Assembly (NCBI RefSeq): GCF_052425735.1
Contig: NC_135759.1
Coordinates: 42,532,001 to 42,596,000, forward strand
Direction: 5' to 3'
DNA: 64,000 nucleotides
From: Oculina patagonica
Taxonomy: Eukaryota
The notes beneath the pieces were generated by a model. The model made no database searches and was not told where the DNA came from. It saw only the letters and a program-made list of their open reading frames with translations. This document shows, piece after piece, positions 31,980-34,900 of this stretch. Every line of letters starts with the position of its first letter. The stretch's first letter is position 1. The translations under genes and the position numbers were made by a program.

Positions 31980-34900
31980 ATGGCGCTGTTTGTGTTGCGT
32001 CGAGCGAACTTTTATGCAAGTAGACTCCTCCTAACTGCGGCTGCAGCTCTAAGTGTCGCTCCCAAAGTGCTACTAGCGGAGTTTTGCAGCAGTGGTAATT
32101 GTAATGACGAAGTTGAAAAAGCCAAACTTGCCTCAGACGCGGCCGAAAAATACCAATTTCAGCCACAAGACACAATATTTGGCAAAATCCTCCGGAAGGA
32201 AATTCCTGCTGATATAATATACGAAGATGAAAAGGTCAGTAAGCGCGATAATTAACGTATTTTTTTAAATTTGTAATAAATGCGCTGCTCTGATATATCT
32301 CCCCTTTTCACAGCATTTATTAGCAGCATGTAGCAGCCCATATATCTACTTACCCCCTCCCCCTGAGGGGAGGGGGACTCCCGTATGAAAGGGGCGCGGA
32401 TGCTCGTTATCTCGCTTAGGAGGCCCTGTTAGGGTAAATTCCGACAGGCGACACGGCTCTGAAACGGCGACATGAAGAAGCTGAAATGACGACGAACGAC
32501 AGGATGCTCCCGTGAAATAACGACAGCGACAAAGAAAAAAGCAAAATGGTCCAAAATCGACAGCGACATTAATAAATTCACTCCACGTTCTCTTTGTACC
32601 GGCTCAGAATAAAGGAAAACATGTCTTAGCTACTTCAGTTTTTCAAAATTTTCTGATGGAGCATGCCCCCAGACCCCCCTACGAAGGTGTCTCCTTCGGC
32701 TTCCCCAAAAAACCTAGAACGCTGTCCCAAATCAGAGTCAAAGTCTCGCTCTTTCCCAACAAATCTAAATGAGAGATCCACGAATAGGGAATATTATGAT
32801 GACAAAATTATGAGAACGCATTATTTCGTGTTATGCACTCCGGACTCGAACATTTCCTACATTATATGGACGAATTCGAAATGCCGACAGCGACATGGGA
32901 ACCTTTTGAAATTGCGACGTAAAAAGGTTTGAAATTCAGACGGGGGACATGAAGACCCCCCCTAACAGGGCCTCGCTTAGGGGTGTATATTTTGGATTTT
33001 TGGTGTTACTCAGTGTGTTCTGAGCAAAACGCCAATAATTGCCCTATGGTCGACTGCTTATCAACAGACTGAAAAGTTAGCGAAAGTCTTAGTTGAAATG
33101 GCAAACTTGGAATTGCACTTAAAAGTTACGGCGTAGGTTTGTAAAAAAAAAAAAAAAAATTGACGCAAAATTCCTAGCTCAGCAATGTAAACTAAGCCTG
33201 TTGCTTATTTCTAGCATTCTGTTGATGAATAGTAGAATAAGGGACAATTTTATTTTTATTTAAGGTGGTATAATAACCTCGTTTGAAACTGACTATATGT
33301 GAATCGATTTTCATGAAAATCATATATAGTCTACAGATGAAGTATATATATGTAGATTATGTACCCCTGCCAATATAAAATTCTTGAAATCACTATTGTC
33401 ACTTGACATCAGCCAATTCACAGGGCATGCATGCACAATGCCTTCCAGATCCTGCATTGTTTAAACTGCAGTGTTTTCTTAGGATGTAGGCATGTATCTA
33501 CATCTAAGAAGTACAAATTAATATTTAGGAGACTTACCGGTAAATGTGTATTTTTGACAACATACAAATGTTGGTTTTAAACAAGTTAGTTTTGACCTAC
33601 ACAAAATAATATATATTTATTCACCTCTGGAAATTCTACCAAAAATAGAAATATATCTGTACTCACCAGAGCTATAACTGCAGATGCTTAATTCCAGATA
33701 AATTGCATCTTCACTAAACTCCCAAAGCAAACGTTCAACAAAAAACATACTTTTGCTTATTTAACAAAAAATATTTCTCACCACCAAGCTGTCAGCTTCA
33801 CCCAGCTATACAAACCAATTGGTTTAATAATGGTGATATGGATTTACAAACATATGACAGCAACAACAAAAACAACAACAACTTTATTTGTATTAAAAGT
33901 GTAAAATAGCGTTCTCTGGTTTAAAAAGTTAAAAAATATGAGCTTTTCGGCTATTTTCCTATAGCCTTTGACGAATGTAAAAAAGATAAAGCGCGTGGTG
34001 GAAATATATACAAGGGAGGGTGTGAAAATAATTAAGAAATAAAATACAATTCAAGAACTGGTGTCCATGTTCTTCAAATGGGCCGATCCATCTGACACAT
34101 CCCTGGGTTTCGCATGTCTTCCCTATATCCGCGGATTGACTGAACCTCTCACCAGGTTACTTCGTAAAAATGACATCCGTGTAGTAAGCAAACCAGCTAA
34201 AACCCTGCAACAAGAATTCCCTTCTCCTAAATTCAGGCAGCCCCTGGATCTCCAATGTAGTGTTGTTTACAAAATTCCGTGCGCTGACTGCTGTTGGAGT
34301 TACGTAGGAGAAACGGGCAGATGTTTTAAAACCCGAAGAAAGGAACATCAACGAAATCTTAAAAATTATACGAGAGGCTCGAACGTTGCTAACCATGCTT
34401 GGCAAAATAATCACTCAATTGACTTTGATGGCGCTACCGTGATAGACAAAGGCAATTACCGCATTCGAAGAACACTAGAATCTTGGCACACTGCCAAAAC
34501 TGTCGGCGCAGACAATAACTCCAAACCGTTACCTAGACAATATTCTATCTTATTGTAATTCTTAATTTGTCTGTTTTTGTCCTTTTTTAGCTTTTAACAC
34601 TTCTATTGTATTTTATTTCTTAATTATTTTCACACCCTCCCTTGTATATATTTCCACCACGCACTTTATCTTTTTTACATTCGTCAAAGGCTATAGGAAA
34701 ATAGCCGAAAGCTCATATTTTTTTAACTTTTTAAACCAGAGAACGCTATTTTACACTTTTAATATGTCTCATCCTGGTTGCAGTTCAATTTTTAACTTTA
34801 TTTGTACCTCCTTTTTTTAAAAAATCAGTTAAGTAGAAAATAACCCAGAGACTCAAAGGACAGTGCAGAATGCAATGGAGTGGACAATTTTTTTTTTTGA

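Follow-up and report, generated by a model that had tools for sequence, protein, structure and literature searches.

A hammerhead-derived RNA motif with a changed core in the terminal repeats of a coral Penelope-like element clade

Background

The core of the hammerhead is among the best-studied of the 'invariant' RNA motifs, and its catalytic pocket is built by a U-turn made up of A6 and U4. Minimal hammerheads of the dimer type are known in the repeats of Penelope-like elements (PLEs; Cervera & de la Pena 2014, PMC4209133), and canonical hammerheads have been stated to be universal in PLEs with a C-terminal endonuclease (PMC8557442). Natural departures from the consensus, including U3-A8, A6C (phage Bcep176), U4C (viroid), and inserted core nucleotides, are described as rare variants (Perreault et al. 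2011, PMC3088659). We analyzed a stretch of 64,000 nucleotides from Oculina patagonica (contig NC_135759.1, positions 42,532,001 to 42,596,000, forward strand; hereafter the window, numbered from its first letter), in which a PLE, truncated at its 5' end, bearing an inverted arm and flanked by a 12-bp target duplication, carries a hammerhead-like motif with the core UCGUCAA in its 3' repeat. This motif and the minimal type I hammerhead of related PLEs are homologous at every position. We judge, with slightly better than even confidence, that the hammerhead fold has been selectively retained and that cleavage has been attenuated or lost.

The motif and its canonical relatives

The motif was read as follows, all parts lying on the + strand of the window:

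34677-34718, +: whole motif, ACAU-UCGUCAA-A-GGCUAU/loop AGGAAA/AUAGCC-GAAA-GC-U-C-AUAU (direct read)
34677-34680, +: ACAU, 5' strand of a weak helix I (from the sequence; pair 2.1-1.1 covaries)
34681-34688, +: variant core U3 C4 G5 U6 C7 A8 A9 plus an extra A, where canonical relatives have C U G A U G A plus A; the 7-nt box TCGTCAA is 34681-34687 (direct read)
34689-34706, +: helix II hairpin GGCUAU/AUAGCC, strands 34689-34694 and 34701-34706 with loop AGGAAA at 34695-34700 (direct read; 96% paired, with compensatory changes)
34707-34714, +: G12 A13 A14, A15.1-GC-U16.1, and C17 (GAAA at 34707-34710, GC at 34711-34712, T at 34713, C at 34714)
34714/34715, +: predicted scissile bond, after C17
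34715-34718, +: AUAU, the 3' side of helix I, able to pair with ACAU at 3 of 4 positions

Re-reading the sequence bore out every letter claimed for 34677-34718 in the original prediction, an earlier reading of this DNA; the extra A at 34688, between the 7-nt box and helix II, is absent from it. Set against the hammerhead consensus for the 5' strand of the core (C3 U4 G5 A6 N7 G8 A9), UCGUCAA agrees at G5, N7, and A9 only, and the 3' strand (GAAA-GC-U-C) agrees throughout with G12 A13 A14, A15.1-U16.1, and an H17 other than G. The tertiary 3-8 pair is present as U3-A8. As for the three-helix scheme, helix II is clear, helix I has 2-3 pairs, and helix III consists of one pair plus the AGCU palindrome (A15.1-GC-U16.1), so that it could form only between copies, as a dimer. 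No canonical CUGANGA was identified elsewhere in the spacer of the window element. Because the core consensus was tested and the motif departs from it, we class the motif as a hammerhead-derived variant and not as a hammerhead ribozyme.

The homology rests on the PLE relatives L077-L080, which share 37-42% identity over the C-terminal 220 aa. In these, the hammerhead found at the same place, 80-100 nt ahead of the following ATG, is minimal and canonical: the first strand of helix I is followed by CUGAUGA and an extra A, then by helix II (often GGCUG...), then by GAA, the palindrome ACGU, and U or C, with the second strand of helix I last. Among the PLE relatives compared, only those at this level of C-terminal identity are canonical. 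These sister coral PLEs (L077, L078/L080, L079) resemble the window element in placing the motif between the stop codon and the next ATG, in the extra A after A9, in GAA followed by a 4-nt palindrome and H, in a helix II that often begins GGCUG, in a TATA-like box upstream, and in the AACCAGAG block downstream of the motif, which is common to canonical relatives and variant families. They differ in having the canonical core, in the palindrome (ACGU versus AGCU in the variant clade), and in a helix I of 4-5 pairs, GC-rich in L077 and L078. The register of the original prediction is valid because the canonical relatives carry the same extra A at the same place; a register with the 7 nt flush against helix II (CGUCAAA) fits the consensus more poorly and is ruled out by the CUGAUGA plus extra A of the relatives.

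The Rfam hammerhead covariance models gave no match to the window motif at E up to 10, a result that carries little weight, as the canonical relatives L077-L079 were also missed at that threshold. The Rfam 15 models thus miss these canonical minimal hammerheads, which have a one-pair helix III (L077, L078, L079), so genome-wide Rfam counts of PLE hammerheads are underestimates. Rfam microRNA matches on L073:197-322 scored under the gathering threshold and were rejected as the junction of an inverted repeat.

Distribution of the variant core

The original prediction took the changed core for a family-wide variant and not for decay, and this stood up in the genome and beyond it. Its pattern had 80 matches in the genome against 0 for a reversed control, and at least 103 copies in the window's genome match the 42-mer with at most 3 mismatches, a sub-variant that has U at position 7 among them. 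Members of the family are near-identical and have intact target duplications, and a full copy has an intact 798-aa open reading frame (ORF); hence the family moved recently with the variant core. L061 and L062, a diverged sister family of the window's element in the same genome, also carry UCGUCAA+A. At least 173 further copies in this genome, belonging to at least 2 families, have CCGUYGA+A; the 2 C3-G8 families of the window's genome were identified through pattern matches rather than as individual loci. Relatives with 56-71% C-terminal identity (L074-L076, L082) have CCGUYGA+A, or CCAUUGA+A in L074, all with GAAAGCU. In the same genome, RF00163 of Rfam finds at least 71 further hammerheads, canonical and of type I, in other elements; canonical minimal hammerheads with the same GAAAGCUC end are present as well.

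A scan of metagenome contigs, anchored on the protein and with no RNA motif in the query, yielded 80 loci. The motif was identified in 44 of these, 16 end too early to tell, and most of the rest hold decayed versions. The clade consensus is Y3-C4-G5-U6-N7-R8-A9 plus the extra A, seen also in about 50 contigs from other assemblies. A canonical CUGANGA as the family consensus, with the window copy merely mutated, was the outcome named beforehand as contradicting a variant core, and the consensus proved non-canonical in the family and in the wider clade alike. Of 59 sequences, 58 have U at position 6. At position 4, C is found in 53 sequences, U in 4, and A in 1; at position 17, 31 have C, 25 have U, and 2 have G, both G17 occurring in single copies. 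The core types seen were as follows:

CCGUYGAA
UCGUNAAA
UUGUCAAA, with U4 regained
CUGUAGAA (L159), in which A6U is the sole difference from canonical
CCAUYGAA, in a clade of six
a few single-copy variants

In terms of descent, A6 would have changed to U in all clade members and U4 to C in most, with C3-G8 changing to U3-A8 in the subclade that holds the window copy. L159, whose core is CUGUAGA, suggests that A6U preceded U4C. A plausible route to U3-A8 starts from G8 lying in a CpG (C7-G8), where deamination would give A8, and a later change of C3 to U would restore the pair.

We also identified versions of the motif that depart further. A well-supported subclade (L074, L096, L162, L141, L148, L151, L095) has A at core position 5 (CCAUYGAA) and a broken helix I, and 3 of its contigs have a 4-nt insertion in helix II; it may be a lineage with a decaying motif. 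The single decayed copies L115, L119, L124, L153, L120, and L091 have lost exactly the CpG-borne bases (G5, G8, and G12 to A; C4 and C7 to U), which fits methylation-driven decay of dead copies, set against retention in propagating lineages. Further, at G000:C7:13571545-13575720 (- strand) 3 motifs of the CCGUCGAA type follow each other on one strand at a spacing of 2064-2065 nt, a tandem array whose unit is shorter than the 2601-bp element and which is possibly a deletion derivative.

Pairing, covariation, and constraint

We compared 46 distinct sequences with the hammerhead pairing scheme and found 84.9% of cells paired, against 23-43% with slid partners. Helix II is 96% paired with compensatory changes in 5 of its 6 pairs, and RNAalifold predicts this helix independently; the covariation that the original prediction had proposed looking for is thus present in helix II. 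In helix I, pair 2.1-1.1, which adjoins the scissile bond, is paired in 43 of 46 sequences (UA 22, CG 16, UG 4, AU 1) and the second pair in 38 of 46, with the outer pairs at chance level, so that helix I amounts to 2-3 weak, AU-rich pairs in the window's clade. Positions 3 and 8 are CG in 22 sequences, UA in 22, UG in 1, and another combination in 1. The description of U3-A8 as a compensatory swap agrees with the C3-G8 of the relatives and with the rarity of mismatches (2 of 46 sequences), with the caveat that it is one evolutionary event: when a tree is built from the coding region next to the motif, the U3-A8 sequences all group in a single clade (SH-aLRT 96), and the 3-8 covariation is therefore one joint switch.

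Changes per site were counted on the tree, for a set located with nhmmer unless noted:

Position 3, 2 changes; position 4, 3; position 5, 3; position 6, 1
Position 7 (N7), 13 changes; position 8, 4; A9, 0; extra A, 0
G12, 5 changes, all G to A at CpG and in single copies
A13, 1 change; A14, 0; A15.1, 2; G and C of the palindrome, 1 and 2
U16.1, 1 change; H17, 8
Flanking columns, 7-20 changes (earlier pattern-based count)

The free N7 and H17 amid fixed neighbours are the hammerhead's own profile; independent lineages are modest in number. In the palindrome, ACGU gave way to AGCU with self-complementarity kept, which fits pairing between two copies as proposed for the minimal hammerheads of PLEs (PMC4209133). 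The first 2 loop nucleotides after helix II (AG) are near-invariant (58 of 59 and 59 of 59 sequences) and the rest of the loop is variable; the AG is also found in the canonical L077 and L078.

These counts bear on the idea that the motif is a dead relic whose function was lost and which is simply carried along, its conservation being only apparent and due to young, related copies and families. Copies within a family are indeed near-identical, so their agreement is uninformative, and PLEs of the Naiad and Chlamys groups thrive without canonical hammerheads (PMC8557442); for the Anolis PLE, cleavage is dispensable in vitro (PMC11167929). However, families that stand 30-45% apart in the C-terminal protein, with mostly divergent spacers, have kept the motif, and on the same tree the flanking columns underwent 7-20 changes against 0-5 at core sites. 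The changes in helix II are compensatory, and core CpG sites decay only in terminal single copies. We consider a relic very improbable.

Transcription start and reverse-transcription hairpin

Two further features of the element frame the motif:

34645-34651, +: TATA-like box TATATAT, 32 nt upstream of A34677
34734-34779, +: stem AACCAG (34734-34739)/CUGGUU (34774-34779), enclosing the 3' end of the insertion, UUAAU/AUG (minimum free energy fold)

Most families, among them the canonical L077 and also L159, have a TATA-like box 31-36 nt upstream of core position 3, and many independent truncated copies start at, or a few nt from, ACATTCG, which lies four nt before position 3 (L002, L009, L014, L022 with the target duplication ATGCTCACTT, L030, and others). 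A34677 is thus the probable start of transcription by polymerase II, and the motif would come first in the transcript. A type III layout, or a ribozyme cleaving upstream of itself (HDV-like and others), was tried as a source of the 5' ends at ACATTCG and rejected, there being no room for a helix I hairpin and no Rfam match; the TATA box at -32 is the simpler account of these ends.

The same features raise the question of a role at the level of DNA, as a core-promoter or downstream element about 5 nt past the probable start or as a recognition site for the endonuclease, the likeness to a hammerhead being historical. The position of the TATA-like box, the clustering of 5' ends at ACATTCG, and the fact that the motif is the best-conserved block of the spacer all agree with such a role, but five pairs of helix II, and pair 2.1-1.1 as well, show compensatory changes, which speak for a single strand that folds and against a site in duplex DNA, and an N7 and H17 left free amid fixed neighbours are the signature of an RNA fold. 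We regard a DNA-level role as improbable.

At the other end of the spacer, the stem at 34734-34779 covaries across families, occurring as AACCAG/CUGGUU, AGCCAG/CUGGCU, and GGUCAG/CUGACC (window, L075, L082, L104, L144, L156, L158, L159, L162), and the 30-nt tail of the insertion ends just past it. By analogy with the Anolis element (PMC11167929), this stem is probably the hairpin where reverse transcription starts. The motif would then lie a few nt past the transcription start, and its 3' copy about 50 nt upstream of the putative hairpin. If the start at A34677 holds, cleavage would strip the cap and a 38-nt leader from the transcript, a loss that offers a possible reason for attenuation. More speculatively, one RNA could carry a 5' and a 3' copy of the motif, pairing through the palindrome.

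Cleavage

Under the reading that we prefer, a retained fold with attenuated or lost cleavage, purifying selection would have kept helix II, the 3-8 pair, G5, A9, G12-A14, A15.1-U16.1, the palindromic helix III loop, and the inner pairs of helix I. The RNA would still adopt the fold of a minimal hammerhead junction that forms dimers, and the element's own RNA would use it in cis, the fold being retained for RNA-protein assembly or for the pairing of two copies. Cleavage is taken as attenuated or lost because the changed bases (A6U, U4C) are those that build the catalytic pocket, where such changes abolish or strongly lower cleavage in the hammerheads tested. A complete scan of single and double mutants of the CUGA turn found low activity for all changes except the 3-8 swap (PMC9901934), which predicts very low cleavage for the variant, and the natural A6C variant cleaves at <0.1 per min (PMC3088659). 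None of 51 sampled copies starts at the equivalent of the predicted cut site, 34714/34715; an absence of 5' ends at the cut site has also been reported for a PLE hammerhead that does cleave (PMC11167929). The subclade in which G5 became A kept diversifying on the tree, which also counts against cleavage, and the Anolis PLE inserts in vitro without hammerhead cleavage (PMC11167929).

The chief competitor is that the motif is a true self-cleaving hammerhead, in which C4 and U6 provide an alternative U-turn and which cuts after C17 in vivo as an AGCU dimer, with the element's protein, or with both; it would process multi-unit RNA or a 5' leader. The constraint per site is hammerhead-like (13 changes at N7 and 8 at H17 against 0-5 elsewhere), the 3-8 pair is kept as C-G or U-A, pair 2.1-1.1 covaries, G17 occurs only in two single copies, and the CpG-borne G5 and G12 are kept in propagating lineages and decayed in dead copies. 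Precedents exist as well: a viroid with U4C is viable, some activity is left with A6C (PMC3088659), and the Anolis PLE hammerhead cuts only with protein (PMC11167929). Against this, A6 is replaced in every member and the double-mutant data hold no rescue within the CUGA turn (PMC9901934), helix I has only 2-3 weak pairs, the sampled copies lack starts at the predicted cut, and the G5-to-A subclade persisted. We consider an active ribozyme possible but rather unlikely.

Several points weigh against the retained fold with reduced cleavage that we favour. The constraint profile is that of a working hammerhead and would be at least as easily explained by continued catalysis: N7 and H17 are free, G12, A13, A14, A9, and G5 have persisted even though CpG sites decay in dead copies, and both the 3-8 pair and the pair adjoining the scissile bond are maintained. 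Minimal hammerheads of PLEs are slow in vitro and can be assisted by protein (PMC4209133, PMC11167929), so mutagenesis of other hammerheads may not transfer to them. As to the conservation itself, the 46 sequences were located by a pattern that fixes several columns (GAAA, AA, and others) by construction; the site-by-site recount used the nhmmer-located set, in which selection was still by overall similarity; and a phylogeny-aware covariation test had too few independent switches for significance.

The element, its insertion, and the host gene

The insertion and its surroundings comprise the following features:

33880-33891: left target-site duplication, AACTTTATTTGT, the same 12-mer as at 34794-34805
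33892-34052, -: inverted, 5'-truncated arm that corresponds to the final ~160 nt of the element in reverse complement (repeat search: 111 nt at 97% and 46 nt at 100% complementary); its inner end (~34052) is approximate, with AGAA microhomology
33936-33978, -: inverted copy of the motif, with the 5' box at 33967-33974 and one extra A in GAAA
34061-34558, +: PLE ORF, truncated on its 5' side to the C-terminal 165 aa (CCHH/GIY-YIG-type endonuclease part), matching the end of the 798-aa ORF of L073
34559-34763, +: pseudo-long terminal repeat (pseudo-LTR), a 205-nt spacer from the stop codon to the ATG of the next unit, ending ...CACTTTTAAT (in the tandem copy L073 the ATG stands directly after ...TTTTAAT)
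34764-34793, +: tail of 30 nt, equal to the opening 30 nt of the ORF in the next unit (ATGTCTCATCC...), on one arm only
34794-34805: right target-site duplication, AACTTTATTTGT (direct read)
34933-35037, +: host exon, part of a HIT domain (Pfam PF01230, E 9.1e-7)

L073, a full tandem copy elsewhere in the same genome with a unit of 2601 bp, encodes an intact 798-aa ORF (L073:371-2764) with the Pfam reverse-transcriptase domain RVT_1. The position of its ATG, immediately after ...TTTTAAT, identifies the tail in the window as the first 30 nt of the next ORF and makes the spacer both 3' and 5' untranslated region. Homologues of the 798-aa protein carry RVT_1 and PLE-type domains, some of them PF01541. 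A Pfam search of the ORF fragment in the window did not call GIY-YIG; its C-terminal motifs YKIPC..C..YVGETGR..EH..H....H were recognized by eye. The element agrees with a PLE both in its coding capacity, a single ORF with reverse transcriptase followed by an endonuclease with a CCHH motif, and in its manner of insertion, with a partial tandem (the pseudo-LTR), an inverted 5'-truncated arm, a one-sided tail of 30-40 nt, and a target duplication. Among named proteins, the nearest come from two corals, Montipora and Oculina patagonica; the Montipora foliosa protein P0002 is 81% identical over the full 798 aa, which is high for corals of distant lineages and could reflect horizontal transfer or very slow change.

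The original prediction held that the inverted arm carries the same core, and this is so for the 5' box at 33967-33974, but the 2 copies are not identical, as the 3' half of the inverted one reads GAAAA (33944-33947 being TTTT on the + strand) and its T-run is one nt shorter. The genome-wide motif pattern accordingly finds only the + copy in the window, and the inverted copy fails it. The arms at 33892-34052 and 34600-34763 form a near-perfect inverted repeat of ~160 nt, ~550 nt apart and inside a sense intron, which would make a long double-stranded hairpin in the host pre-mRNA.

With the HIT exon at 34933-35037 on the + strand, the element is intronic and in sense orientation. The original prediction had placed it in sense within intron 1 of HINT2; the orientation and the HIT-domain exon were upheld, and HINT2 as the host gene, with the element in its intron 1, is plausible. 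An upstream exon ending near 32234 is HINT-like by eye, both exons having been inspected separately and unjoined. Elsewhere in the window, we identified a gene for the U11 spliceosomal snRNA at 9044-9172 (- strand; Rfam RF00548, 90.9 bits, E 2.7e-15).

Comparison with known systems

In the searchable literature we found no natural hammerhead with A6U and none of these sequence strings in such a context. Within the literature searched, a diversified clade of C-terminal-endonuclease PLEs in which A6U, usually with U4C, is fixed and the rest of the motif appears to be under selection would thus be new. The change is fixed in hundreds of copies across several coral assemblies, with every other hammerhead feature apparently under selection. 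If the variant cleaves, it would be the first natural hammerhead lineage without A6, and the 'invariant' CUGA turn would have a working alternative. If it is inactive, PLEs would keep the hammerhead fold for a reason other than cutting, which bears on what ribozymes do for these elements. Descriptor searches built on CUGANGA would miss the coral variant, and such searches and Rfam alike undercount motifs of this kind.

Among described systems, the hammerheads of PLE pseudo-LTRs (PMC4209133) are alike in being type I, in lying in a PLE repeat, in their long helix II, and in a helix III made of A15.1-U16.1 and a small palindrome, which implies dimers. The U3-A8 variant was already described there (Schistosoma, ~1300 hits), as were a 2-bp helix I in D. 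virilis and a low activity in vitro. The coral clade differs in having A6U throughout and mostly U4C, neither of which was reported in that study. The variants of Perreault et al. (PMC3088659) are isolated and of reduced activity, whereas A6U, with or without U4C, is fixed in the coral clade, which is diversified and numbers hundreds of copies.

The Poseidon element PAc of Anolis (Frangieh et al. 2024, PMC11167929) likewise has a hammerhead near the internal start of reverse transcription and a 30-40-nt tail equal to the stretch between two start sites. Its core is canonical and overlaps the start of the ORF, whereas the coral motif, with its changed U-turn, precedes the ATG by ~85 nt. The Naiad and Chlamys PLEs (Craig et al. 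2021, PMC8557442), like the coral clade, proliferate without a canonical CUGANGA core; they have an N-terminal endonuclease and mostly no recognizable hammerhead, whereas the coral clade has a C-terminal endonuclease and a near-complete hammerhead scaffold. The coral clade thereby qualifies the published universality of canonical hammerheads in PLEs with a C-terminal endonuclease.

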